This document shows, piece after piece, positions 3,410-42,379 of a stretch of DNA of 44,750 nt (positions are counted from its first letter, which is position 1; every line of letters starts with the position of its first letter). Source of the stretch: Octopus bimaculoides (taxonomy: Eukaryota). Position numbers and translations under genes: made by a program. The stretch is taken from positions 162,539,215 through 162,583,964 of the forward strand of contig NC_068983.1 of NCBI RefSeq assembly GCF_001194135.2, given 5' to 3'. Under the pieces are notes generated by a model that saw only the letters and a program-made list of their open reading frames with translations, was not told where the DNA came from and did not search any database.

Positions 3410-4353
3410 CTAAAAAATTTAAAAAAAAACCCTCAATAACTTGTAATTAGAGAACTTCATTAATTGATTTCAAGGCTTGGGTGATGAAAATTGTGATGCT
3501 AATGTCTCTCCCAAGAGATTACAGGAATAACTAAATCATCATCATCATCATTGTTTAACATTCACTTTCCCATGCTGGCATGGGTTGGATGGTTTGACTG
3601 AGGACTGGCAAGCCAGGAGGCTGCACCAGGCTCCAATCTGATCTGGCAGAGTTTCTACAGCTGGATGCCCTTCCTAACGCCAACCACCATCTACCAAATC
3701 CACTCCCAAGGTTTTGTTCAGCTCAAGGTTATAGTAGGAAACACTTGCCCAAGGTATCCAGAGGGGAACTGAACCCAGAACCATGTGGTGGAGAAGCAAG
3801 CCTCTCACCATACAGCCATGCCTTAGTGTTCATAGTCTATTAATATAACAGCATTCATATAACTTTACTTATTTTCTCACAATAAAACCTATCCAGACCT
3901 ACCACCATCATCATCATCATTTAACGTCCACTTTCCATGCTGGCATGGGTTGGACGGTTTGACTGAGGATTGGCAAACCAGGAGGCTGCACTAGGCCCCA
4001 ATCTGATCTGGCAGTGTTTCTACAGCTGGATGCATAGTGGGTGCTTTTTATGTGCCACCAGCATGGGAACCCGTCAGGGGGCACACTGGCATCGACCATG
4101 CTCAAATGGTGCTTTTTATGTGTCACTGGCATGGGAGCCAGTCAGGTGGCACTGGCATCGACCATGGGAAAGTATTGTCTTGCTTGGAAACAGGCGAAGG
4201 TTGGCAACGGCAAGAATATGTGTCTGGCCATAAAAAATCTGGCTGACCCATGCAAACATGAAAAAGTGGACGTTAAATGATGATGATGAGGAGGAGTAGA
4301 TGGTCTTCAAATGAGTAAAAGAACCAAAAAAAAGTAGAATTTCAGTGACTTAC

Positions 4354-4607: not shown

Positions 4608-4883
4608 ATTTACATTTGATGGATATTTGCCCTCATCTTGTTTGTTAACACAACATTTTGGCTGATATACCCTCCAGCCTTCATCAGGTGTCTTGGGGGA
4701 AATTTCAAACCTGGGTTCTCCTTCTTAAGGTATTTTTCGATGTTATTATCATTATTCAGGTCACTGCCTGGAATTGAACTCGAAATCTTGGGGGTTAGTA
4801 GCCCACACTCTTAACCACTACACTATATGAGAACAAATATCCATCAAATGTACATAATTCCTCATCTCTTAAATATAGAACTG
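4608..4883 (-). mobile_element. tRNA-headed, hammerhead-containing SINE-like element, copy 1, with inverted tail fragment at its 5' end
   Basis: Minus strand: tRNA-like head (A box TAGTGGTTAAG, B box GAGTTCAATTCC), short AAT tract, body, hammerhead motif, tail; 4834-4883 is the tail in opposite orientation. Confidence 0.8.
4647..4692 (-). ncRNA. Minimal type I hammerhead ribozyme motif, mutated (G12>A, C15.2>U)
   Basis: GACAC CUGAUGA A GGCUG-loop-CAGCC AAAA UGUU GUGUU. Confidence 0.55.
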
Positions 4884-5029
4884 TGGGGTTAATTTGTTTG
4901 ACTAAAATTCTTCAAGGTGGAGCTCCAGCACAGCCAAAGCCACATGACCAAAACAAGTAAAAGAAGACCAGTTACAGAGAATCCGTCTGGGATCTTGAAA
5001 CCAGTTATTTTATGTAAATAGAGATTATC

Positions 5030-5830
5030 ACCATCATTGTTTAACATCTGCTTTCCGTGCTAGCATGGGTTGGACGGTTTGGCTAAGGACTGGTGAGCCA
5101 GTGGCTGCACCAGGCTCAATCTGATCTGGCAAGGTTTCTACAGCTGGATGCCCCTCCTAACGCCAACCACTCCATCTACCAAATCCACTCCCAAGGTTTT
5201 GTTCAGCTCAAGGTTATAGTAGGAAACACTTGCCCAAGGTATCCAGAGGGGAACTGAACCCAGAACCATGTGGTGGAGAAGCAAGCCTCTCACCATACAG
5301 CCATGCCTTAGTGTTCATAGTCTATTAATATAACAGCATTCATATAACTTTACTTATTTTCTCACAACCACTCCGAGTGTGCAGTGGGTGCTTTTATGTG
5401 ACACCAGCATGAGGGCCAGTCAGGAAGTTCTGGCAACGACCATGCTCAAAAGATATTTTTTACGTGCTACCTGCATGGGAGCCAGTCCGGTGGTACTGGC
5501 AATGACCACGCTTGAATGTTGCTTTTCATGTGCCAACAGTACGGGTGCCGGTAGGCTGACTCTGACAACAATCACACTTGAATGGTGCTTTTCACGTGCC
5601 ACCGGCACAGGAGCCAATCTGTGACCCTGGCAACGATCACACACAGATGTGCTTTTAACGTTCCACTGGCACGAATACCAATCAGGCGGTACTGTGATCG
5701 GCCACGTTGGTGATTTTGATTCGTTTTCACTTGCCTCAATAGGTCTTCGCAAGTTCATTGTCCAACGAACGAAGGGTACTCATAAGTGGGCCAGTTAAAC
5801 TCCACATTCGGATGTGCTTTTAACGTTCCA
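5030..5830 (-). mobile_element. RTE 3' UTR copy interrupted by a 196-bp insert
   Basis: Colinear with 40167-40750 except for 5172-5367, which is identical to 3687-3882. Confidence 0.75.
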
Positions 5831-6304
5831 CTGGCACACAGAAACTAAAAACTTACAGCAATGTTTACAAGACTAGAGAGTGGGATACTGGCACGGTACT
5901 AGACCAAATGTCTAATTATATTTCTATTCATCTGTTGCCTGAATCGATATTGCTGACCTCTGATAAACTACAAATACCAGTAATATACTGCGTCCATTTA
6001 ATGACTCCATTCCTGCTCTATAAAATGTGGTTGCACATCTCAGAAAGAAGCCCACATTTGCAACACTAAAATCTGAGAGTTGTTGAATGAATGCAAGCAA
6101 TGTGCCAGGCAGATGCAAAGTAAAATGTTGGGGTTCAAGTCTTTTGTGCGATATTCACAGTTAATGGAAAATTAGTAAAACAGTTGGGGGAGGGTAAACC
6201 TCTTCTAGCCTGGTGGGCTGCTGGAATTTTAATTTCTCTAAACAATTCAGTTATTAGTGCGTCAAATGTTTATTTATGAGTTTATGAATTTGTTTTGCAA
6301 GATT

Positions 6305-6627
6305 CTTGTTGTGGAATCGTGTGTTGAAACAGATATTGTTATATTTCGTGATGCTCATTTATTTTTCCTTGTCAAATAAACGCACACACCTATATATTCG
6401 TTCTTTACTCGCTTATTATTGTTCTTATTTTATCTTATGTCCATCGTATGGAAATCTTTCGTCTCGTACCTGTGGACTCTTCAGCAACTCTTTTCAGAAT
6501 GGACTAAACAGAACAGGAACAAACATGTGGATGGAAGAGTCGCTGAAGAGGTCACAGATGTGTGACGAAAGATTTCCAGACAAGCGACGTAAGATAAAAT
6601 AAGAACAATAATAAACGAATGAACAAC
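6305..6627. mobile_element. Foldback/MITE-like palindromic element, truncated by an assembly gap
   Basis: Arms ~6406-6492 and ~6535-6621 are reverse complements (e.g. TTATTATTGTTCTTATTTTATCTTA / TAAGATAAAATAAGAACAATAATAA). Confidence 0.6.
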
Positions 6628-7155
6628 NNNNNNNNNNNNNNNNNNNNNNNNNNNNNNNNNNNNNNNNNNNNNNNNNNNNNNNNNNNNNNNNNNNNNNNNN
6701 NNNNNNNNNNNNNNNNNNNNNNNNNNNNNNNNNNNNNNNNNNNNNNNNNNNNNNNNNNNNNNNNNNNNNNNNNNNNNNNNNNNNNNNNNNNNNNNNNNNN
6801 NNNNNNNNNNNNNNNNNNNNNNNNNNNNNNNNNNNNNNNNNNNNNNNNNNNNNNCAATATATTTTAGAATAATTTTGTGAGCAGCTTAAATGCATGTCGT
6901 TTTTGTTTTGTATGGGTGGGGGATAAGAAATTTGAAAAAGAAGTGTTTAAAATTGTTTTTTTTTTTTAATTTTTAAAATTTTAATGGTGTTTCAGAATGT
7001 GACAGAAGAAAAGAAAAGAAAAGAAAAAAGAAATTCTATGTAATTCGTGACCGCTATTACGAAAGTCCGCCGGTAGATTTTCCTCAAAACCTATCGAGTG
7101 TCGCTGTTTTTACGATAAAATAAACACCACGTCTCTGTGCTACATCTATAATTAC

Positions 7156-7242
7156 GGTTAATGCAATTTCACATCTCTCCTTCAAAATATTAAAAATAAA
7201 AAAAATGCATTTTTCAAGGAGAGATGCGAAACTGCATTAGCC
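7156..7242. repeat. ~32-bp imperfect inverted repeat with A-rich spacer, PDCD2L intron 1
   Basis: GGTTAATGCAATTTCACATCTCTCCTTCAAAA vs reverse complement of 7211-7242, GGCTAATGCAGTTTCGCATCTCTCCTTGAAAA. Confidence 0.75.
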
Positions 7243-7666
7243 TCCTATAATTTTATAATGAATTTTATAACATATCAATATCCTTCAATATAGATAGAAA
7301 AACAAAAATAACTGCTGCTAGAATTTAGAATGTTTCTACTAAGTTCCTTTAAATTATTGAGACTTATTGCCACACATGTTTATATTATACAGAATCTCAT
7401 CAAAATAATAATTTCTAAAAGAGTACTTCCTATTTATAAATTCTTGGAAGGTTTGATGTGTCATTCCAAATTGTCAACAACGTTATTCAGCTGTTTTGGA
7501 GTTTCACATTTCGTCTGCGAAATGTTTTCGACTATTGGAACTAATACATTATGAGCTGAAGAACATAAACAAAAATTCTATTTTAGGAACCATTTATCCG
7601 TTGGACAAGACTTTCATCACGAAATACGATAAGAATTTATACCCAAAAAATCGTTCTAGTACTCAC

Positions 7667-7753
7667 AGGGTATCCACCGATTTTATTGATGAAAGAAGAT
7701 GTCACAACTGTCTTTGGTATAGCAACATCTTTGACACCTAAGAGGACCGGCAT
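7667..7753 (-). CDS. PDCD2L: PDCD2L coding exon 1 (87 nt, ATG at 7753)
   Basis: MPVLLGVKDVAIPKTVVTSSFINKIGGYP then GTGAGT donor; matches the family N-terminus PVLLG.D...K.GG.P; phase 0 joins exon 2; no upstream in-frame ATG before an in-frame stop. Confidence 0.9.
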
Positions 7754-9198
7754 GTTTGTCTTGAAGACGGGAACCTGTTTAAAGGATGGTGGAGTATAAG
7801 AGGCACAATGGTTATAGTTGGTGATAGATTCGGTTACAGAAATGTCGAAGATGTCATTGGGGGTTTAAAGAATTAAATTAAGGAAAGAGAAACTAATCAC
7901 TTTAGAAACTAATTACCACGTGTTGGGAGTGTTTATAGTTGTCTTCCTCTAACACAGGAGAGTTCCCAGTCAGTGCGCACGAGAGTAATTAAGAGCGGAG
8001 AAACGAAGAGAATTTATTATGACGAAGTATGCGAGAAAATGAAAAGAGAGAAAGAAAAAAATGATGAAAAAGAAAGGAGTAAATAATTAAAGAAAAGAGA
8101 CATCTACACTCTAAAAAAGTGTGCGGTGGGGTTGTTTGGGTTTGAAACACCAGAGCATATTTTTTTTTAGATTCTACTCACGCACCGTTTCAAGCTAATT
8201 ACGAACATCAATTATTTTTCGAGAAATTAAGGCCATCCTTCGATATTGATACACGACTTCATAGCAAGACTTCCGCCCGTCCCCGTCCCACAAACCACCT
8301 TTTAAAAAAATTTGACACAACCCCCGCCCCCCCTTTTCGGCTACGGGGAATACGAATCTGCAAAAAAATTGGCAAAAATCGGCATTTTTAAATTACCACC
8401 CACACCTCACCCCCATTTTTTCACTTTTTTCAGAATTTTTTTTTTCAAAATATGCAGAAAAATACGGAGATTATGATTCTGAAAAAAATTTCCAAAAATT
8501 TTTGTAAAATTTTTTTTTCAGAATTTTTTTTTTNNNNNNNNNNNNNNNNNNNNNNNNNNNNNNNNNNNNNNNNNNNNNNNNNNNNNNNNNNNNNNNNNNN
8601 NNNNNNNNNNNNNNNNNNNNNNNNNNNNNNNNNNNNNNNNNNNNNNNNNNNNNNNNNNNNNNNNNNNNNNNNNNNNNNNNNNNNNNNNNNNNNNNNNNNN
8701 NNNNNNNNNNNNNNNNNNNNNNNNNNNNNNNNNNNNNNNNNNNNNNNNNNNNNNNNNNNNNNNNNNNNNNNNNNNNNNNNNNNNNNNNNNNNNNNNNNNN
8801 NNNNNNNNNNNNNNNNNNNNNNNNNNNNNNNNNNNNNNNNNNNNNNNNNNNNNNNNNNNGTGGGGGGGGGGCGGAAGTTTTTCCGACTTCATTCACTTAT
8901 ACAATCATGATAAAGATAAAGAGGCTAAGCCGAAAAAGATGAATGATGTCGTCTCCTCACACTTTGTAGACCAACACTGAAGAAATGGTTTGATTATTAA
9001 TAAAAATTCCATACCTATTTGGGTGGCAGAAATTCACTCCAATTCGTCCTGAAGTCTTTCTCTTGAAACAAAAAATGGTTGTAGTTTTCATAAGTGACAT
9101 GAAACATTACAGTTTTGGAGAGAGGTTAACTAAAATCAAAAAGAACCACCCCATGAGTAAAAATGGTATCTCCTCTCCTAGAACTTGTCAAGATATTC

Positions 9199-9432
9199 CA
9201 GTGGTTCTCATCCACTTTTTAACCCAAAGTGGACTCTCAGAATCATTTGCTGTTTTAAAAATCCTATTATTTTTTAGAATTAAATATTATTAGGAATTGC
9301 ATGAAAAAAGAAAATTAAGATATTTGGTGTATTGAGGAAGTATAAGCAGTTTATTGCAGATAAATATTAACAACAAAAAAAAAAAATCTATGGACCCTCG
9401 AGGATCAGATGGACCCTGGATGAGAACCACCA
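9199..9432. mobile_element. hAT-type MITE
   Basis: Perfect 14-bp TIR GTGGTTCTCATCCA (9201-9214) / TGGATGAGAACCAC (9417-9430); left end CAGTGGTTCTCA is typical of Charlie-like hATs; 8-bp flanks AGATATTC / AGACACTC (6/8 match). Confidence 0.75.
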
Positions 9433-10450: not shown

Positions 10451-11221
10451 CTTACTCTTTGACCTTTGGGTTAGAGGTTAATAATGTCTTAGGATGTCGG
10501 TGCTTGTGACTCTTTCAATCTGTCATACATCCTTGATACTCAGGTGGATTTGAGATTTACTGCATCTGTAGCTGAATGAGACAAAACACTGAATACCTGT
10601 GACATTTGACATGTTCAGAGGAGCAGGGGTCACTGACATGGAAGCTATTGCTGCTGGCGTTTTGTTTCATCGAAATATCTAAAGATGCTCCAGAAGGGAT
10701 CTGTCAGACTCAGTGCTTCACCTTCACAATAATCCATGGTAATGCTGAGAAGGTTTCAAGTTACTTCAAACTTTTTCAGAGGAGAACACTAACAGAACTG
10801 AGTGTGTGTGTGCATCAATTTACATTATTTATTTAATTCTTTTTATTATTGTATTATTATTGTTATCTCCAGTGTATTCACAACTGTAATCATTGGTTCC
10901 CAACTCGCCCTTTTCTTCTGATGATGGGATGGGTTACAGATCACATTCTGTGCTATAGGAAAAATGCACAGATCTGCCTCTAATTTGCAACTTTCCCAGA
11001 AACAGCTGTAAAGTATCTGCACTTTCCCTATCCTTCACTTTTGAGTTTCTCTCTAGTGATCCCATGGATCACTAGGTTAACCTGGTCTAGGTTAAACCAA
11101 TTTAGACCTACCTCTTCATCACGGAGTATACCTGTCTACGCCGAGCCACTATGAACTTTCACCTTCCAATCTTTCCTGGTTTCCTGCTATATTCACACAC
11201 ACATTCATAATATGTAATGAT

Positions 11222-11391
11222 AGGTGCAAACATGGATGTGTGGGAAAAACTTGGCTTCGGGTTCAGTGTCACTGCACGGCACCTTGAGCAAGTGTCTTCT
11301 ATTATAGCACCAGGCCGACCAAACCCTTGTGAGTGGATTTGGTAGACAGAACCTGAACGAATCCCATCATACACACATACACGCACACATG

Positions 11392-11468
<77 letters not shown>

Positions 11469-11673
11469 GTAATGTATGTATGTGTCAGTGTCTTTGTGTC
11501 TCTGTTTGTCCCCTACCACCGCTTGACAACCGTTAACTAGCGGTTCGGCAAAATACACCGATAAAATAATTACTTGTATTTATTTTTAAGTACTGGTGTC
11601 GGTTCGTTTGACTAAACCCTTCAAATCGATGCCCCAGTACGGTCGCACTCTAAAGACTGAAGCCAGTAAAAGA
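11222..11673 (+). mobile_element. tRNA-derived SINE family D/C (head, microsatellite, tail)
   Basis: GGGTTCAGTGTCACTG...CCTTGAGCAAGTGTCTTCTATTATAGC...GTGGATTTGGTAGAC head, (CT)n(AT)n centre, tail ending GAAGCCAGTAAAAGA; same layout as 18646-19040 and 20730-21068. Confidence 0.75.
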
Positions 11674-11766
11674 CCATAGACAGATAGAATAGAGAGATAG
11701 AGAAATGGCTAGACTAGATAGATATATACGCACTCTATGTACATATATACGAGGTGCCTTTTTATT

Positions 11767-11821
11767 CCGGAAGTACTTTATTTTGTTTCCGAGTACGAAA
11801 CCGAACCGGAAGTGATGTCAC
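11767..11821 (+). promoter_or_regulatory. Putative promoter of the THAP-transposase gene: two ETS sites, the second as an ETS-CRE-like composite
   Basis: CCGGAAGT at 11767-11774 and 11806-11813; CCGGAAGTGATGTCAC at 11806-11821; ~290 nt upstream of the ATG. Confidence 0.55.
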
Positions 11822-12105
11822 TAATTCTCTGTTCCACGCTTTCAGTGGTAATCAAAACAAAACTTTAACACAATTAAGCCAAGATTAGAGTTTATATATA
11901 AATATCAGGTTTTATGGTGATGATGATGAACAATTGTATAGTTCCTTTCTAAATATACAACAAATGCTTTAAAAATGCATAAAGCCAACCACAAAATGAA
12001 GGAGGTCGAAAATAAGCGACAAAAAGTTTGATGCAACAACAACAACAACAACCATCATCAAGGTTGATTAAAGTGTTGGATTGATTAGATCCGGATCGAT
12101 ACTAA

Positions 12106-12485
12106 ATGGCTGAAGATCAAACATCTGGAATGACGACGACTTCGACTTGTATAACAACAACAACCACATCAACATCATCGATGTCCTTATCGAGTGGCAA
12201 GAGTTCGATCAGCTCAGAGACTCCTCCAGTTGCTGCTGTGGCCGTGACCACAATTAAGCCATCATCGGATGAAAATAAAACGAAACTACTACAGTTGTTC
12301 ATCTCAAAGCAAAAAGGACAGAATGCTTTCTGTTGTGTACCACTGTGTAAGAATTCTTCAAAGAAAAATCCCAATTTGCATTTCCACACTTTTCCAAAAG
12401 AAGACAAGATAATTACTTCTGGTGCTCGATGTGGAGAAAATCTTCGGAAAGTTTGGCTTTGTCAAATCCACCGCAAAAAATTCAA
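12106..12485 (+). CDS. THAP/Harbinger(ISL2EU)-transposase-derived gene, exon 1: Ser/Thr-rich extension and first half of THAP
   Basis: ATG 12106; CCVPLC..S...LHFHTFPKE...W motif; AA|GTAAGT donor, phase 2. Confidence 0.85.
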
Positions 12486-13465
12486 GTAAGTTAATTATTT
12501 GAAAGATCCAGATACCCCACCCCTTATTATATATAAACAAAACTTTCAAATTAGATTTTTTTTACAAAGAAATATACTTTACGATTCAGTATTATTAATT
12601 AGTGACTGGATTAATTAAAATTATTTAGTTTTGATTAGCTTTATAGATCTCGAATCGAATGTGTAATGTTACTACTCCTTATTGTTGCAGAAAATTATTA
12701 TCAAGGCTGGACAATCGTTGGCACATCGGATAAAGTGCTTAGTTGCACTTCTTCCGGCTCTTTACGTTCAGAGATCAACTTTGCTTTTCATCCTTTTGGG
12801 GTCGATAAAGTAAGGACCAGTTGAGTACTGGGTTCGATGCAATCAACTTGGACCCTCCAGTGAAATTGCAGGCCTTGTGCCAAAAAATCATCATCATCAT
12901 CATCATCATCATATTATTATTATTATTATTATTACACATTACGTTAAAGGAAAAAAAAACGTTTTATGTTGAAATACAATATTGTTTAGTGTTAATCTCA
13001 TGTCCTAACTCCGAATATTTACTTATTCTTGCCTTTTCTGCGACTCCCTTCTTTTTATTAGTTTCTGATTTCAAGTTGACTTCATGTAAACTGAGTACAG
13101 AGAAGCAGAATTTTGTTGCACAGGGTTTCGATCCCACCTTAAAACTACTTCTGTCACTTCACTTAGAACACCAGGAAGACATGTCTGTCATATTCCCTAT
13201 ATTACACAGTATATAATGTAGGGATATAATCGATTACTTGGTCAGAAAAGTAGCTGTGTACTTTCTGAATCAGTTATAGATTTTTCGATGTCGGCGCAGA
13301 TCGATCGTGTGTGCTACATACACCTATTATTCCCCGTGTCTTGGATGTTGTCTCGCGGGGAAAAGTTCTCAGGTCTTTATTAGTCTACATTTGTATATTT
13401 CACCTTCTGCCTTGCATACATCAATCTTTCATACCACACACACACACACATATATATGTATACAT

Positions 13466-13683
13466 AAGGCGGCGAGCTGGTAGAAACGTTAGCTCGCCGG
13501 GCGAAATGCTTAGCGGTATTTCGTCTGCCGTTACGTTATGAGTTCGAATTCGACTTTGCCTTTCATCCTTTCGGGGTCGATTAAATAAGTACCAGTTACA
13601 CACTGGGTCAATGTAATCGACTTAATCCCTTTGTCCTTGTTTGTCCTCTCTATGTTTAGCTCCCTGTGGGCAATAAAGAAATA
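13466..13683 (+). mobile_element. tRNA-derived SINE family B in the THAP-gene intron
   Basis: AAGGCGGCGAGCTGG...GAGTTCGAATTCGACTTTGCCTTTCATCCTTTCGGGGTCGATTAAATAAGTACCAG. Confidence 0.8.
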
Positions 13684-14019
13684 CATATATGTATACATTT
13701 AAGTTCTGTTTGGAGGAAGGTCCTGTGTCTATGGCTTTTTCTGAGAATTGGAAAAGATGTCTTCCTGGGGTTAAAAGGTAGTAACATAGTTCTACGTAGG
13801 ACGGCCACCTTGCATTGGCAAATAAACTTTCCAGTACAGTATAATTACTATTTAAATCTCATTTAAAGATTTTAAAACTAGCTTTTTTGCACCTGATACA
13901 TAATTAATGTTTTGCATAACCCCTTTGATATCAACCCACCTGAAATTGCCCCTGGTTCTATGATATATGCCTCTTGACTTTTCATCAGAATTTCTTGTTT
14001 ATTTATATTCCAAACACCA

Positions 14020-14220
14020 GCCCCCTTTTTGTCTTTGTAGCAGTTGACTATAATGCTGTTGCTGCACCAGTCATTGAGTATGACTTCTTCTTGTACAAAC
14101 TGATTAAGTATGAGTGTGATTAGGTTGTATTCTACTCCATCAGATATTTGAAGCATCACCACAGTAATTTCTCACCAACCTGTCTTCATATGCTTAATTG
14201 CTTTGTCTATCATATTGCTG
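14020..14220 (-). mobile_element. Older RTE LINE fragment in the THAP-gene intron
   Basis: Translates ...VILNDWCSNSIIVNCYKDK, homologous to the 1-312 fragment. Confidence 0.75.
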
Positions 14221-14532
14221 AGTAAACTGGAGCAATGTGAAATAAAGTGTCTTGCACAAGGTCACAGTGTGCCACCAGTAATTGAACTTACGAGCTTTTG
14301 CTCATGAGTCAAATATCCTAACAACAAAGCCACACACCTTTACAGTCATCTTATATAAGTGTGTAGAAATTTGATACAAGTGAAATTATAATTCTTGTAT
14401 GTTGGCCATATTTCCTGATATTACTCTTGGTAGTAAAAATATACTTCCAAAGATTACTGTTATGTGATGGGTAACACTCAAAAAGGTTTCTTTTTATCAT
14501 TTTGCAATACATTTATTTTTATTTTTTTTCAG

Positions 14533-15793
14533 AATTACAAAAGATACTCTTGTGTGTAGCGAACATTTCAACAACGAAGATTACAAACCAAGAACCAGAA
14601 GGAACAAGCTTTATGGACAACCTGGTCATTCTTTGCGGCTTTATGATAATGCTTATCCAACATTATTTAGCTGGAACAACTGGGGTAGAAGATCCTCTGG
14701 AACAGAGGAATGTCAAATGGAGACAAATAATAATTGTAACTTTGAACATACAGAGGTACCGGTCATTGATATGATGCACAATTATAGCCTTCCAAGTGGA
14801 ATAGACGATGCTGGTACGATAATTCAGGATTTAAGGAGACAACTTGATCAAGCAAAAATTGACAGTTTTCGATTTTCTTTAGAACGGTACAGTGCCGATG
14901 ATGCTTTAGTTGAACATTACACTGGCTTTGATTCTTATGGAATTTTAACCAAATTCTTTCATACTCTTGAAGAGTGGGAACATGCTTCAATTATGCGGTC
15001 CAAGATTCGTGTGAGTAGTAGAACTACTGAGGGGTTGCAGCCGGTTGGCTGTGAGAAGGGGCTTCAACTGATTGACCAATTAGTTTTGTATCAAATGTAT
15101 ATATATCGAGGACTGTCTGTGATGGATTTAGCAGCAAGATTTCTGGTGCCGGTTGATACTGTTTGGGATATAATTATTACCTGGGCAGATATTTTGTTCT
15201 TTTTCCTTGGCGTAATGACAGTTTGGCCCTCGAAAGAAGAAGTGAGAGAAAGTCTGTTGCCGATCAGCCTGAATGATTCCAAACTGAGTGACACTCGAGT
15301 TTGTCTTGAATGTGTGGAATTAAGATCAGAAACATCTGCGTCCCATGTTTTGAAAAGTCTGTCATATAAAGAATATAAATCAACTTATACTCACAAAGGT
15401 CTCATAGCCATCGTCCCAAATGGTACCGTGATATTTGTATCTCCTCTCATGTCTCATTGTCTGTCTGACCAAGATTTAACAATGAAATCTGGAGTTTTAG
15501 ATCTCTGTGAAAAAGGTGACGCTATAGTTGTGGACAGTGATTTTAAGATAAATAAACTGTGTTCCGAGCGTGGAATCAAAGTGTACCATTCCGATTATAA
15601 ACTGTGGGAAACATCAGAAACAACAGAAGATATGACAGTCTTCTGGTCACCCATCAAAAATGTCATGAGAAAAATCCTTGAAAATCAACTTTTTCTCTGT
15701 GTTCCATCGAATATCAAAGAAACGGTCTCACAAATGTGGGCTGTTGCTTGTCTACTTTGCAATTTCCAGATACAACAACCGAAAACAACGTAA
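14533..15793 (+). CDS. THAP/Harbinger(ISL2EU)-transposase-derived gene, exon 2: end of THAP, coiled coil, HTH and degenerate DDE domain; spliced product 546 aa
   Basis: TTTTTTTTCAG acceptor gives in-frame KKFK-ITKDTLVCSEHF...AYPTLF (THAP end); YTGF motif; DLAARFLVP..TV..II.TW (HTH); YK...T.KGLIAIVPNG.VIFVS...SD, GDAIVVDSDF, QMWAVACLLCNFQ (DDE_Tnp_4-like); no internal stops. Confidence 0.88.
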
Positions 15794-16129
15794 CAACTGC
15801 TAATTAAACTGTTAATTACATATGGAATTTTAATGAATTATTTTTATTTTATAACAAAATATAAAAAAAAAAAATCACTCATTATTTCTTTGTTTAATGT
15901 TGGGTCTTTTATTGTGGAATTGGCAATAACTAGCTTTTAATTAGTGTTATTCTTTGTATTTGTAGAGAAGCAAACAAGGTTGGAGGTTAAGATACTGACT
16001 TGTTATCGATATGGTCATGGGTTCAATTCTTACTATAGTCAGAATAAGGTATAAACAAAATATATTATGGTTCAGTGATCATTTGGGGAAGGGTTTCCAG
16101 TTATGAATTTGCTTCAACAAAATACTTTC

Positions 16130-16505
16130 TTCCAACAGTACCGCCTGATTGGCACTCATGCCAGTGGAACGATAAAAGCACATCCAAGTGTGATCGTTGC
16201 CAGGGCTACGGATTGGCTCCTGTGCAGGTGGCACATGAAAAGTACCATTTGAGCATGATCGTTGGCAGCGTTACTTTAGCAGCATGTGAAAAACAACATT
16301 CAAGCGTGGTTGTTGCCAGAACCGTTTGACTGGTCCTCATGCCGGTGGCACATAAAAGCACTCACTACACTCTCGGAGTGGTTGGCATTAGGAAGGGCAT
16401 CCAGCTGTAGAAACTCTGCCAAATCAGATTGGAGCCTGGCTTGCCAGTCCTCAGTCAAACCGTCCAACCCATGCCAGCATAGAAAGCGGACGTTAAACGA
16501 TGATA
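16130..16505 (+). mobile_element. RTE 3' UTR copy
   Basis: Reverse complement of the 40167-40650 sequence, ending AAAGCGGACGTTAAACGATGAT. Confidence 0.8.
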
Positions 16506-16924
16506 ATGAAGGTTAGTTAGGAAAAATAAAGTAAACTGTGAATGGCATCTCCTTTCCTAAGATTTGATCTAAACCCATTTCATTCTCACTTGGGAACTCA
16601 TCCAAAATATTTCAATTTATTGACCAATATGTAACTGCTTTTCCAGTTCATTTGCATCTGGTCCTTGGAGTGCCTTTAGCAGAATTCCTCTTTTGCAAAG
16701 ACTCAGAGGAAACATTTTGTCCCTTCCACCCCTGTTTTTATCTACAAACACTTCTGCTGAGCATTGATCAAGGAATACCTGAAAGAAGTTGCAGGCACTG
16801 CCATTACTAATTTGAAAAATAAAATTGAAACCTATAATTCCAATTTATTAAATTATATCTAAATCTTTTCATTTTGAAAGATTATCTGCCATATATTGTC
16901 AAAGTTCTAACATGTCTCAGAATA

Positions 16925-17150
16925 CAGTTCTATATTTCAGAGATGAGGAATTATTTACATTATTTACATTTGACAGATATTTGTCCTCATCTTGTTTGTT
17001 GTTAACACGTTTCGGCTGATATACCCTCCAGCCTTCATCAGGTGTCTTGGGGAAATTTTGAACCTGGGTTCTCGTTCCTATGGTATTTTTCGATGTTATT
17101 ATTATTATTATTATTATTCAGGTCACTGCCTGGAATTGAACTCAGAATCT
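16925..17150 (-). mobile_element. tRNA-headed, hammerhead-containing SINE-like element, copy 2 (head truncated, full 3' tail)
   Basis: Same body as copy 1; (AAT)n tract; tail ...GTCAAATGTAAATAATGTAAATAATTCCTCATCTCTGAAATATAGAACTG. Confidence 0.8.
17004..17046 (-). ncRNA. Minimal type I hammerhead motif: intact CUGAUGA and GAAAC, 3-nt deletion at the cleavage site
   Basis: GACAC CUGAUGA A GGCUG GAGGGUAUAU CAGCC GAAAC GU GUU. Confidence 0.55.
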
Positions 17151-18645
17151 GGTACTGTCAGTAAAACATTCAGTTTATGCTGAAATTATCCAAGTTTCAA
17201 CATCAATTGGTTGTTTGATTAACCTAACACATCAACACTTGATCATTACTTTAATAATGACTCAAGCTTATTGATTTTATCGGGTGAATATAATTAAATG
17301 AATCAGCCTAATCATTTATCTGGGATTTATTTTGATGGCTTTTGGATTAAGAATCCAACTTCAGTCTTCTACTTTGCTTTCGATAAATTAAGTACTAGTG
17401 AAACATTGGGGTAGGTGTAATCGACCAGTCCCCTCCCCCCAAATTTCAAGGTCTTGTGCCCTCAGTAAAGAGGATTATTTCAAGACTAAGGACAAGAGAT
17501 CGTAGTCTGGGTGAAAGGACATAACTCTGCATGTTAAGAAAATAATGAAATCGCACTGGATCAAAGGTGAGTAAACAGTCTAAAACGTATCCAGTTGTTA
17601 AAATAATAATTTATGTCTTGACAGTCTAGGGTAATCGGTTGTGCTGTAAAATAATGGAGATAAATTGCTACTGTGTTGCAAAGAAAAACTTAATCGATCG
17701 TAAATAGAATTATCTCAATGGAATGATCAACAACTTGAGTGGCACATAAAAGCACCCACTACACTCTCAGAGTGGTTGGCATTAGGAAGGGCATCCAGCC
17801 ATACCATGCCAAATCAGACTGGAGTCTGATGCAGCTTTCCAGCCCCGGTCAAATAGTCCAACCCATGTAGTACAAATGTCTTGTTTTCATAAGTTTTGAA
17901 TTAAAATCTTCCACCAAACCTTAGTCACAATTTATGTTCCTAACAATAGCTTAATGATAACTAAGTTATTTTACTAAATTCTTTGTTATATTTAAAGTAA
18001 TTGAGAGAAACACAGAACATCTCAAAATACAATAACGAAAGGGTGAAATGATGATGATGATGTTGGGACTAAGAAAGGAACGTCTCAGGTTTTCCATGAA
18101 AAAGTTTCTTAAGTTAAAGAATTTTGCAAAGATTGTAAGTACTTCCATTACCATGTCTCAAAACGTTCAATAAAGAGAAGATATTGGAGGACATTGTCAG
18201 TGGCTGTGACTCAAATATTGGAAATGCATGTGAAATGTTGATTAAATGGTAAAAACGCAATGTTCTGAAACACAGTTGAGTTATATAAGTCAAACAGTGT
18301 TTGGTATATACTAGTATTAATAGAGAGAAGGCATGTGGCTTAGTCATTAAGGGGCGTTCATCTCACAACCATATGGTTGTGTGTTCAATTCCCAGTGGCA
18401 TGGTATGTCCTTGAGCAAGGCACTTTATTTCACGTTGGTCCACTCCACTCAAATGATAACAATGAGTATTATATGTAATTTCAAAGAGCCAGTCCTGTCA
18501 CGAAGAACCTCCCAGAGAACTACGCTAGGGATATGCATGTCTGTGGAGTACTCAGCCACTTGCATACTAATTTCATGAGCAGGTTGTTCCATAGATCGAA
18601 TCAACCGGAACCCTTGCAACTGACAGAATGCCAGTATTATCACTA

Positions 18646-19832: not shown

Positions 19833-39003
<19,171 letters not shown>

Positions 39004-39571: not shown

Positions 39572-39760
39572 GACAGGCGACGAGCTGGCAGAATCGTTAG
39601 CACGCCGTGCGAAATACTTAGCCGTATTTCGTTTGCCGTTACGCTCTGAGTTCAAATTCCGTCGAGGTCGACTTTGCCTGTCAGCCTTGCGGGGGTCGAT
39701 AAATTAAGTACCAGTTGCGTACTGAGATCGATCTAATCGACTGCCCCCCCCCCAATAAAT
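39572..39760 (+). mobile_element. tRNA-derived SINE family B
   Basis: ACAGGCGACGAGCTGGCAGAATCGTTAGC...GAGTTCAAATTCC...GACTTTGCC...GGGGTCGATAAATTAAGTACCAG. Confidence 0.8.
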
Positions 39761-40166: not shown

Positions 40167-42200
40167 GTCGTTTAATGTCTGCTTTTCATGCTGGCATGGG
40201 TTGGACGATTTGACTGAGGACTGGCGAACCAGATGGCTGCACAAGGCTCCAATCTGATCTGGCAAAGTTTCTACAGCTGGATGCCCTTCCTAACGCCAAC
40301 CACTCCGATAATGTAGTGGGTGCTTTTATGTGCCACAGGCATGATGGCCAGTCAGGCAGTTCTGGCAACGACCATGCTCAAAAGGTATTTTTTACATGCT
40401 ACCTGGACAGGGGCCAGTCTGGCAGCACTGGCGACGACCTCGCTCGAATGTTGTTTTTCATGTACCAGTAAGGCGACGCTGGCAACAATCACGCTTGAAT
40501 GGTGTTTTTTTACGTGCCACCGGCATGGGAGCCAATCCATGGCCCTGGCAACTATTATGCTCGGATGTACTTTTAACATTCCACTGGCTCATGTTCCAAT
40601 CAGGCAGTACTGTCATTGGCCATGTCAGTGATTTTTATTTGATTTCACTTGCCTCAATAGGTCTTCGCAAGCAAAGTTTATTGTCCAATGAATGAGGGGT
40701 ACCCATAAGTTGGCTGGTTACACCCACTGGCATAGGCCACGGGCTATGGTCTCACTTGTCGGTCTTCTCAAGCACAGCATATTTCCAAAGGTCTCAGTCA
40801 CTAATCATTGCCTTGGTAAGGGCCAATATTCGAAGGTCATGCTTCACCACCTCATCCCAGGTCTTCCTGGGTCTACCTCCTCCACACGTTCCCTCAACTG
40901 CGAGGGTGTGACACTTTTTCACACAGCTGTCCTCATTCATTCGCAACACATGACCATACCAGCGCAATCGTCTCTCTTGCACACCACAACCGATGCTTCT
41001 TATGTTCAGCTTTTCTCTCAAGATACTTACACTCTGTCGGGTATGCACACTGACATTACTCATCCATCGTAGCATACTGGCTTCATTTCTTGCAAGTTTA
41101 CACATGTCCTCAGCAGTTACGGCCCATGTTTCACTACCATGTAGCATGCCTGTTCGTACACATGCGTCATACAGTCTACCTTTTACTCTGAGCGAGAGGC
41201 TCTTTGTCACCAGCAGAGGTAAGAGCTCTCTGAACTTTGCCCAGGCTATTCTTATTCTAGCAGCTATACTTTCAGCGCACACTCCCCCGCTAATGACTTG
41301 GTCACCTAGATAGCGGAAGCTATCGACTACCTCTAGTTTTTCTCCCTGGAATGTGGCAGAAGTTGTTCTCTGCACATTTTCAGTGTTTATTGCTCCTGAG
41401 CATCTGCCACATACAAAAACTATCTTCACAGTTAGCCGTTCTTTGATATTGCTGCACCTCTTATGTGTCCATAGCTTACACTGGGTACATCTTACAGAGT
41501 TTCTACGTATGCCTTTTCTACAGATCGAGCAGGGCCATCTACCTGAAGGGATTTGTGGTTTGTCTGCCTTCCTACTTATTAGGACTTTGGTTTTAGCTAG
41601 GTTGACTTTAAGGCCCTTTGATTCTAATCCTTGCTTCCACCCCTGAAACTTCTCCTCTAGTTCTGATAGTGACTTGGCAATTAGAGCAAGGTCATCAGCA
41701 TAGAGGAGCTCCCAGGTGCATCCTGTCTTGAATTCTTCTGTTATTGCCTGGAGGACTATGATAAATAGGAGGGGGCTGAGGACAGAACCTTGGTGGACCC
41801 CTACCTCCACCCGGAATTCTTCACTGTACTCGTTGCCAACCCTCACCTTACTGACAGCGTCCCTGTACATGGCTCGCACAGCTCTCACTAACCATTCTTC
41901 TATCCCAAGTTTCCTCATTGACCACCAGATAAGGGATCGGGGGACCCTGTCAAAGGCTTTCTCCATGTCAATGAAAGCCAGGTACAGAGGTTTATCTTTG
42001 GCTAGGTATTTCTCCTGCAGTTGTCTTACCAGAAATATAGCATCAGTGGTGCTTTTCCCTGGCACAAACCCAAACTGCATCTCATCTAAACTAACTCTCT
42101 TCGTAATTAGTTGGGCTATGATCCTCTCCGTGACCTTCATTACCTGATCCAACAACTTGATACCTCTGTAATTATTTGTATCCAATGCATCACCTTTAGG
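40167..42200 (-). mobile_element. RTE-clade LINE, 5'-truncated, young (RT ORF 42218-40794 open; ~590-nt 3' UTR)
   Basis: NYRGIKLL, QFGFVPGKSTTDAIF, DMEKAFDRVP, GVHQGSVLSPLLF, LLYADD (41691-41702), FRYLG, RLRWYGHV, GRPRKTW; no frameshift over 474 codons. Confidence 0.95.
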
Positions 42201-42379
42201 GTGCAACAGAAGTAACACCCTTTTCTATTTGTATTTTTTTATAATTTTCTGCAGCATAAATTTCTTTTTTTTTTGTTTTATATGATATAATTTTATAATG
42301 TATCTTTTTTTTCTCTTTATTTCAGGAATTTTAGATAAATAAGGCCATGCAATTAAATTTCAAATGTGGAAGGAAATCT

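Follow-up and report, generated by a model that had tools for sequence, protein, structure and literature searches.

In this study, a gene in a 44,750-nt stretch of the Octopus bimaculoides genome (hereafter the window, whose numbering is used throughout) was analysed, and it is very probably a host gene of coleoid cephalopods captured from a transposase of the ISL2EU group (PIF/Harbinger-ISL2EU-Spy superfamily). The best explanation overall, to which we assign a probability of about 0.7, is that this captured transposase would now serve as a non-catalytic DNA-binding regulator. An earlier note on this DNA had proposed a domesticated host gene, and that proposal is supported here by synteny, by purifying selection, by a non-canonical catalytic triad and by the lack of transposon hallmarks. 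The gene represents a clean case of domestication, being ancient and constrained, with catalytic residues lost in lineage-specific steps.

Gene structure and domain content

The spliced coding sequence comprises 1641 nt and encodes 546 amino acids followed by a stop codon, in two exons joined at a GT/AG junction on the forward strand, on which the parts of the gene described below also lie. Exon 1 (12106-12485), as delimited by the open reading frame and the splice donor, contains the ATG, with an in-frame TAA immediately 5' of it, encodes a low-complexity N-terminus rich in Thr and Ser (residues 1-75) followed by the first half of a THAP domain, and was also found in O. sinensis, Argonauta and one decapod. 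The donor at 12486 reads GTAAGT, and because the acceptor is TTTTTTTTCAG directly followed by A, exon 2 was placed at 14533-15793, where it encodes the C-terminal THAP half, a linker, a helix, the helix-turn-helix (HTH) region, the RNase H-like DDE_Tnp_4 fold and the stop codon. The intervening intron (12486-14532; 2047 nt, with GT...AG ends) interrupts a codon after its second base, and its position and phase are identical in all cephalopod copies examined (O. sinensis, Argonauta, decapod A and paralogue B), its length being about 9 kb in decapod A. Exon boundaries, splice sites and coding length therefore bear out the uninterrupted 546-aa spliced frame described previously. Of the SINE and RTE insertions reported in the intron, the former stood, as two copies of a SINE-like interspersed repeat (12771-12885 and 13467-13631) with further copies elsewhere in the window, while the latter was left unconfirmed, the candidate 94-aa ORF of the RTE fragment yielding no Pfam match. 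An Rfam search of 11000-17000 returned no match.

The THAP domain (12331-14668, residues 76-172) exceeded the Pfam gathering score (E = 1.1e-13, 52 bits), and its coding parts, 12331-12485 and 14533-14668, are separated by the 2047-nt intron as had been claimed. Its zinc ligands C76, C81, C135 and H138 are all present, together with P97, W117, F139 and P169 (the AVPTIF-box proline); these signature residues are identical across all orthologues covering the region, and the cephalopod THAP loop is lengthened by a conserved insert of about 10 residues. In a sequence search of the PDB the finger matched the solved THAP1/2/11 structures, and only THAP domains were returned, with no solved Harbinger or IS5-like relative. 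Downstream lies the motif MHNYSLPS (14774-14797, residues 208-215), which every A and B copy of the cephalopods shares unchanged apart from N210, replaced by S in Argonauta. In the family alignment this motif falls on the [DE]HxY column of the transposons, where about 112 rows are occupied and D/E stands in 72, H in 75 and Y in 68. M-H-N-Y departs at its first position from [DE]-H-x-Y, the HCF-1 binding motif that such THAP proteins carry between the finger and the coiled coil.

The DDE_Tnp_4 fold (15308-15763, residues 386-537) also scored above the gathering score (E = 1.3e-14, 54.5 bits), and the HTH_Tnp_4-like region (15062-15199, residues 304-349), at 19.1 bits, fell below its gathering score of 27 and is helical in the predicted structure, so that the THAP, HTH and DDE domains named at first reading were recovered, the HTH weakly. 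A model of the whole protein from 7 sequences had too low a pLDDT (34) to be used and was replaced by an AlphaFold2 model of residues 203-546, built from only 21 sequences with a pLDDT of 78.6, rising to about 90 in the DDE_Tnp_4 core; its best fold matches were the catalytic cores of retroviral integrase, Mos1 and ISCth4. The earlier claim of a coiled coil was reduced by this model to one predicted helix of about 20 residues (14810-14869, residues 220-239, model residues 18-37) and nothing beyond it, possibly a dimerisation helix.

Conservation of the locus and selection

The PDCD2L-MCM5 locus had been put forward as the place to look for orthologues, and the gene was found between these two neighbours in O. 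bimaculoides, Octopus sinensis and Argonauta hians; PDCD2L also lies upstream of the orthologue in Sepia pharaonis. In octopods and one cuttlefish the gene stands head-to-head with PDCD2L, and MCM5 was not found in the 71 kb that follow it in Sepia, nor within 10 kb at the orthologous locus L003. In a search of 1.84 billion representatives the orthologues scored 832-1027 bits versus 292 bits for the next relative; word-indexed profile searches added few relatives, and the exhaustive search of representatives was required. Sequence comparison indicates that this is an orphan gene, cephalopod-specific among the sequences searched, and that it predates the octopod-decapod (octopus-squid) split.

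Pairwise dN/dS was tested against neutrality with a binomial test. Ratios were 0.063 between the window and O. sinensis (dS 0.24, p = 2e-31), 0.14 between the window and Argonauta (p = 1e-41), 0.07 for the decapod A pair (p = 3e-53) and 0.17 for the paralogue B pair (p = 6e-9), and per domain they were 0.08-0.19 in the DDE fold and 0-0.07 in the HTH_Tnp_4-like region. Over these four independent pairs dN/dS is far below 1 (0.06-0.17), not near it, and strong purifying selection has acted on the full length of the gene from before the octopod-decapod divergence onward. Spliced full-length transcripts of both paralogues occur in cuttlefish RNA runs, cuttlefish being the only animals in which they were seen, and one of these transcripts terminates in a run of A that would fit a poly(A) tail.

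The hallmarks of a mobile element were searched for at the same locus. Within 10500-17500 the gene is not enclosed by any inverted repeat, no AT target-site duplication flanks it, and tblastn with two YqaJ proteins gave no match in the window or at the orthologous loci L001, L002 and L003, in agreement with the initial reading that neither terminal inverted repeats (TIRs) nor a partner ORF are nearby. The window holds no second copy, and each species has one protein cluster, on one contig; near-identical copies with TIRs or target-site duplications were thus not encountered, and a single copy at the same locus across octopods and cuttlefish fits the immobile gene that had been suggested. The transposase domain architecture and the repeats in and around the gene might instead speak for a transposon copy, active or recently dead, a decaying pseudogene or a chance ORF rather than a host gene. 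However, a single copy syntenic in three genera, free of TIRs and of a partner ORF, with an ORF intact in every species examined and a dN/dS that rejects neutrality at p values from 6e-9 to 3e-53, makes any of these highly improbable.

Catalytic residues in the A and B lineages

ISL2EU-group transposases carry the catalytic motif D...K...D...D...P...R(3)E (PMC4122938), and the triad columns were placed by MAFFT alignment with 150 family representatives. Site 1, which is D in 124 of the 150, is E386 (15308-15310), and Glu stands here in all seven cephalopod sequences. Site 2 is kept as D461 (15533-15535; D in 128 of the 150), and elsewhere reads N in Argonauta and one decapod and E in paralogue B. 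Site 3, E in 112 of the 150, is K502 (codon 15656-15658) within the R(3)E motif at 15644-15658, the Arg of which is replaced by W498 in the octopus gene; at this motif decapod A has R...D and paralogue B R...E. The states are accordingly E-D-K in octopus, E-D-D in decapod A and E-E-E in paralogue B, with N at site 2 in Argonauta. The family PPF motif is gone, and the P of the catalytic motif is absent in octopods. The E, D and K that had been read at the expected catalytic positions were therefore confirmed as a non-canonical triad and not an intact DDE, and in the structure prediction E386 lies in the first strand, D461 at a strand end and K502 in a long helix. From these replacements we infer a catalytically dead protein in octopus.

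Decapods have a second, older paralogue (B) beside A, and bootstrap support in a neighbour-joining tree was 100% both for the cephalopod clade and for the A clade. Considered initially as the orthologue of a remote mollusc, for example Nautilus, P0006 (43% identity) proved to be a paralogue, since the same RNA run (SRR8281684) holds the cuttlefish A orthologue P0163; relatives of P0006 occur in sequencing runs numbered adjacent to those of P0004. The alignment indicates that Glu at site 1 was already present in the ancestor of all cephalopod copies, so that the change from the first catalytic Asp preceded the A/B duplication, and that sites 2 and 3 are lineage-dependent. In the octopod lineage the third residue changed to Lys and the accompanying Arg to Trp, with Argonauta losing the second Asp as well. 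Since sites 2 and 3 differ between lineages, the loss of catalytic residues looks stepwise, and since decapod A and paralogue B keep three acidic residues, loss of catalysis may be limited to octopods. The series E-E-E, E-D-D, E-D-K and E-N-K offers a natural test of when and how a transposase fold ceases to work as an enzyme.

The same residues bear on whether the protein is still an enzyme, that is, a non-canonical nuclease or recombinase using E386, D461 and another metal-binding residue in a host DNA transaction. An invariant E386 and an RNase H-like fold constrained like the DNA-binding parts (dN/dS 0.08-0.19) would also fit a retained metal- or DNA-dependent activity; acidic triads persist in decapod A and paralogue B, and the domesticated relative HARBI1 is generally known to keep its triad. 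However, the octopod third position is Lys and its partner Arg is Trp, the PPF motif is lost too, and Argonauta, with N at site 2, has one acidic residue left and yet remains under purifying selection. In retroviral integrases, conservative replacement of the corresponding Asp residues by Glu largely abolishes activity, which counts further against an enzyme, and we regard a catalytic octopod protein as unlikely. Similarly doubtful is a divided history, in which the active site of an ancient coleoid A/B family was remodelled from D to E before the duplication and fixed since, the decapod proteins (E-D-D and E-E-E) still carrying out a metal-dependent host DNA transaction and octopod A being a pure DNA-binding regulator.

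Putative function and comparison with known systems

Because key catalytic residues are lost, a DNA-binding regulator is likelier than a cutting enzyme, and the sequence features taken together make a non-catalytic DNA-binding regulator the probable state of the octopod protein. Such a protein would no longer cut or join DNA; its intact C2CH THAP zinc finger would bind specific DNA sites, the conserved helix, the HTH and the RNase H-like fold would form a scaffold for dimerisation or partner binding, and the invariant MHNYSLPS is a putative docking site. By analogy with plant ALP1 and human THAP proteins, it might regulate transcription or chromatin. Cephalopods are a clade known for genomic novelty, and since the gene is cephalopod-specific, older than the octopus-squid split, tightly constrained and subject to lineage-stepwise catalytic loss, it is a candidate lineage-specific regulator.

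The nearest relatives are two-ORF ISL2EU elements, which encode a THAP-HTH-DDE transposase and YqaJ, and many of the best-scoring ones match across the THAP region too. The ISL2EU affinity proposed at the outset was upheld in both family members examined, the transposase being fused to YqaJ in P0059 and adjacent to a YqaJ ORF in P0196 (locus L014). The ISL2EU-like element at L014 is enclosed by a candidate TIR, an inverted repeat of 14 nt without mismatches, and the flanks carry no AT duplication. Intact two-ORF elements of this group are present in public assemblies, and with THAP and HTH kept while the catalytic residues degenerate, a dead transposase could be imagined whose THAP domain attaches to related ISL2EU elements at their ends and so blocks their mobilisation. 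Conservation in two old paralogues from before the octopod-decapod split, however, clashes with the turnover of transposon families, the nearest intact transposases are just about 27-34% identical, and no related element lies in the window, hence such a transposon repressor seems improbable to us.

The ISL2EU group belongs to the PHIS or PIF-Harbinger superfamily of DNA transposons (PMC4482050, PMC4122938). With it the cephalopod gene shares the order of an N-terminal THAP, then HTH, then DDE_Tnp_4, and its K415, D439 and G-D-x4-D-x2-F block align with conserved family landmarks. It differs in being a single-copy, syntenic gene that has no TIRs, AT target-site duplication or YqaJ partner, in an E-D-K triad versus an intact D-D-E, in a DDE_Tnp_4 score of 54 bits versus 126-141 bits for intact members, and in an identity of at most about 34% to any non-cephalopod member. 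To our knowledge, host-gene examples from this superfamily are of the Harbinger/PIF type, and the literature searched contained no host gene assigned to the THAP-bearing ISL2EU group, nor one described for cephalopods.

Among such genes, Arabidopsis ALP1 is a domesticated PIF/Harbinger transposase and an accessory subunit of PRC2 (PMC4671723). Compared by description, ALP1 is likewise a host gene that derives from a transposase of this superfamily and has a degenerate triad (DGA), and it resembles the cephalopod gene in its ancient conservation, in having one conserved intron close to the 5' end and in its old paralogues with differing triad states. However, ALP1 stems from the Harbinger/PIF branch, has no THAP domain, has the Myb-derived partner ALP2 and is a plant gene of independent origin. 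HARBI1 and DPLG, compared by description, are single-copy, syntenic genes under purifying selection, as the cephalopod gene is. Vertebrate HARBI1 and Drosophila DPLG are reportedly independent DDE_Tnp_4 domestications. HARBI1 keeps an intact DDE, has no THAP domain and pairs with the Myb-like NAIF1, whereas the cephalopod gene has a THAP domain of its own and a degenerate triad. For both HARBI1 and the DPLG genes, PMC9179366 cites Kapitonov & Jurka 2004 and Casola et al. 2007. Human THAP proteins differ from the cephalopod protein in having no transposase fold, and the latter has MHNY in place of [DE]HxY and the insertion of about 10 residues in the THAP loop. Its C2CH finger nevertheless aligns to the solved THAP1/2/11 structures, a likeness to human THAP1 and THAP11. 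In THAP1 a short H-x-Y motif and then a helix come after the finger, an order that the cephalopod protein shares. New regulators have arisen repeatedly from domesticated transposases, as ALP1, HARBI1 and the THAP proteins exemplify.

Gene structure and locus

The gene under study consists of two forward-strand exons, 12106-12485 and 14533-15793, with an in-frame TAA preceding the ATG at 12106, a donor matching the consensus (GTAAGT), an AG that follows a polypyrimidine tract and ends at 14532, and a stop codon at 15791-15793. As the earlier note had proposed from the sequence, the spliced coding sequence (1641 nt, 546 aa) encodes a protein with THAP, HTH and DDE_Tnp_4-like domains; in Pfam, THAP spans residues 76-172 (E 1.1e-13) and DDE_Tnp_4 residues 386-537 (E 1.3e-14), and HTH_Tnp_4 at residues 304-349 reaches 19.1 bits, below the cut-off of 27. 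The solved domains of THAP1, THAP2 and THAP11 align with the THAP part, where the zinc ligands C76, C81, C135 and H138 and the signature residues P97, W117, F139 and P169 are all present. In RNA runs, Logan contigs (about 2 kb) representing cuttlefish A (P0163, an orthologue of the window gene) and its paralogue B (P0006) contain the full coding sequence with exons joined and UTRs, and one of them ends with a stretch of A residues compatible with a poly(A) tail.

Both the codon that the intron interrupts and its phase agree with those in O. sinensis, Argonauta, S. pharaonis (intron of about 8.8 kb), a decapod contig (about 9 kb) and paralogue B, in whose genomic contig the acceptor site falls exactly at the exon junction. 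The intron of the window gene harbors two copies (12771-12885 and 13467-13631) of one of two short interspersed SINE-like families whose copies are 70-89% identical; the same family also occurs at 631-791, 24063-24255, 26135-26306, 27987-28172 and 39575-39742, and the other at 3532-3688, 16372-16509, 23440-23591, 26816-26960 and 32425-32580. The start codon is preceded, at a distance of about 640 bp, by a (TA)n microsatellite (11424-11467). On the reverse strand, 40797-42224 encodes a 476-aa non-LTR retroelement ORF with an RVT_1 domain (E 4e-33) and a PHD-like finger, and related copies are also found in the Argonauta locus.

This is a host gene rather than a mobile element. In line with the earlier note, which saw no TIRs or partner ORF nearby, no inverted repeat bracketed the gene within 10500-17500, no YqaJ-like ORF was found in the window or in the orthologous loci, and tblastn of the protein against the window matched only its two exons. 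The first coding exon of PDCD2L (about 7640-7864, reverse strand) lies about 4.2 kb upstream, head-to-head, so that a shared bidirectional promoter region is possible, and MCM5 exons (19836-23268, reverse strand) follow downstream, tail-to-tail. The suggested search for orthologues at this syntenic position succeeded in O. sinensis (LOC115209356, 96% identical) and Argonauta hians (79%), where the gene is flanked by a PDCD2_C gene and MCM5, both on the reverse strand; gene order in the window is collinear with O. sinensis, and non-coding DNA of the two loci is about 82-88% identical. Synteny was partial in Sepia (Acanthosepion) pharaonis, where the PDCD2_C gene again lies upstream on the opposite strand but MCM5 was not found within 71 kb downstream. 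In the deposited 754-aa model there (CAE1138293.1; CAHIKZ030000002.1, 10001-81520), the orthologue's final residues give way to about 190 unrelated ones taken from far downstream; as transcripts yield a protein of 569 aa, the model appears to be an annotation fusion.

Source family and catalytic triad

Searching 1.84 billion representative proteins exhaustively with a profile returned 6278 relatives at E <= 0.001, with the cephalopod orthologues scoring 832-1027 bits and the next protein 292 bits. The best non-cephalopod relatives are THAP, HTH_Tnp_4 and DDE_Tnp_4 proteins of a starfish, fishes, gastropods and a sea spider that keep the intact motifs IIDCTE, MADKGF and RxHVERAI. One relative (P0059) carries a fused YqaJ domain and another (P0196, from a cluster of 31 members) adjoins a 559-aa YqaJ ORF, and this two-ORF layout, which is defining for ISL2EU elements (PMC4482050, PMC9179366), bears out the ISL2EU-type assignment made earlier. 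In an ENA assembly, the P0196 element spans 4842-8791 of its locus with the two ORFs convergent; a 14-nt perfect inverted repeat (4286-4299 and 9273-9286) marks its possible ends. Identity between the cephalopod genes and these relatives does not exceed about 34-37%, and the cephalopod protein scores 54 bits against DDE_Tnp_4, whereas intact members reach 126-141 bits.

The codons pointed out in the earlier note correspond to E386, D461 and K502. MAFFT was used to align the window protein with six homologues from cephalopods and with 150 representatives of the family. In this alignment, site 1 is D in 124/150 representatives and E in Octopus, Argonauta, decapod A and paralogue B; site 2 is D in 128/150, D in Octopus and decapod A (N in one), N in Argonauta and E in paralogue B; and site 3 is E in 112/150, K in Octopus and Argonauta, D in decapod A and E in paralogue B. 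The R of R(3)E (114/150) is W in Octopus and Argonauta and R in decapod A and paralogue B, and K415 and D439 likewise fall on the corresponding positions of D...K...D...D...P...R(3)E, the signature published for the family (PMC4122938). In an AlphaFold2 model of residues 203-546 (mean pLDDT 78.6, pTM 0.76), which predicts a helix at residues 220-239, E386 lies in the first strand, D461 at a strand end and K502 in a long helix, the canonical positions of an RNase H-like fold. The triad placement made by eye was thus correct. The best PDB fold matches were retroviral integrase cores and the Mos1, ISCth4 and Mu transposases, with weak E-values (from 3e-3) and probabilities up to 0.99.

Selection and order of events

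dN/dS, estimated from codon alignments by the Nei-Gojobori method and compared with neutrality in a binomial test, was far below 1 in all four pairs: 0.063 for the window and O. sinensis (dN 0.015, dS 0.238, p 2e-31), 0.14 for the window and Argonauta (p 1e-41), 0.07 for two decapod A sequences (p 3e-53) and 0.17 for two paralogue B sequences (p 6e-9). Intron divergence between the two Octopus species is about 13-15%, thus the rate at silent sites about equals or exceeds that of non-coding DNA. Regional dN/dS was 0-0.12 in THAP, the middle region and HTH; the loosest regions long enough to judge were the low-complexity N-terminus and residues 350-385 (0.11-0.19), and a short linker of few codons (residues 173-202) reached 0.27 in the decapod pair. 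The DDE fold itself gave 0.08-0.19, which argues that the transposase fold is retained for a reason, even where the triad is lost.

Paralogue B (P0006 and P0167; loci L004-L006 and L009-L010), with the triad E-E-E, is a second, older paralogue in decapods. P0006 is 43% identical overall, and 38-42% identical to the A genes over conserved C-terminal columns; the notion that it is an orthologue from a distant species was rejected because run SRR8281684 contains both P0006 and the cuttlefish A transcript. A neighbor-joining tree that included transposon outgroups unites all cephalopod sequences in a single clade and places paralogue B outside the octopod and decapod A clade (bootstrap 100% for both); no octopod B-type protein was found in a search whose query profile included P0006. 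The E at site 1 and the intron, common to all, point to an order in which transposase capture, the D-to-E change and intron fixation would have come first, followed by duplication into A and B and then, some 270 million years ago, by the divergence of octopods from decapods. The remaining changes would be lineage-specific, namely N (Argonauta and one decapod) or E (B) at site 2, and K (octopods) or D (decapod A) at site 3.

Putative function and comparison with known systems

Apart from a single Asn-to-Ser substitution in Argonauta, the motif MHNYSLPS (14774-14797) is unchanged across all A and B proteins of cephalopods, and it aligns with a [DE]HxY column widespread in related transposases. 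Human THAP proteins bind HCF-1 through [DE]HxY, but the cephalopod version fails its first position, thus the HCF-1 link suggested by this motif is only a lead. According to alignment and model, the octopod protein combines an intact THAP finger with a well-folded RNase H-like core whose active site is degenerate; the finger would provide specific DNA binding and the remainder dimerisation or partner recruitment. By analogy with THAP proteins and ALP1, a PRC2-associated protein with a likewise degenerate triad, DGA (PMC4671723), we infer that the octopod protein is most likely a transcription or chromatin regulator. Residual catalysis is possible in decapod A and paralogue B, judging from the three acidic residues that both retain. 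Together, these proteins provide a natural and well-documented range of triad states open to experimental use.

Public databases list the proteins only as uncharacterised, our literature searches returned no description of such a gene, and the accessible part of a survey of transposon-derived transcription factors that includes Octopus bimaculoides does not mention it. Domestication of transposases of this superfamily is well known from HARBI1, Drosophila DPLGs, ALP1 and HDP1, and the mechanism that we propose follows the usual pattern; the novelty lies in the source group, THAP-bearing ISL2EU elements, and in the clade, coleoid cephalopods.
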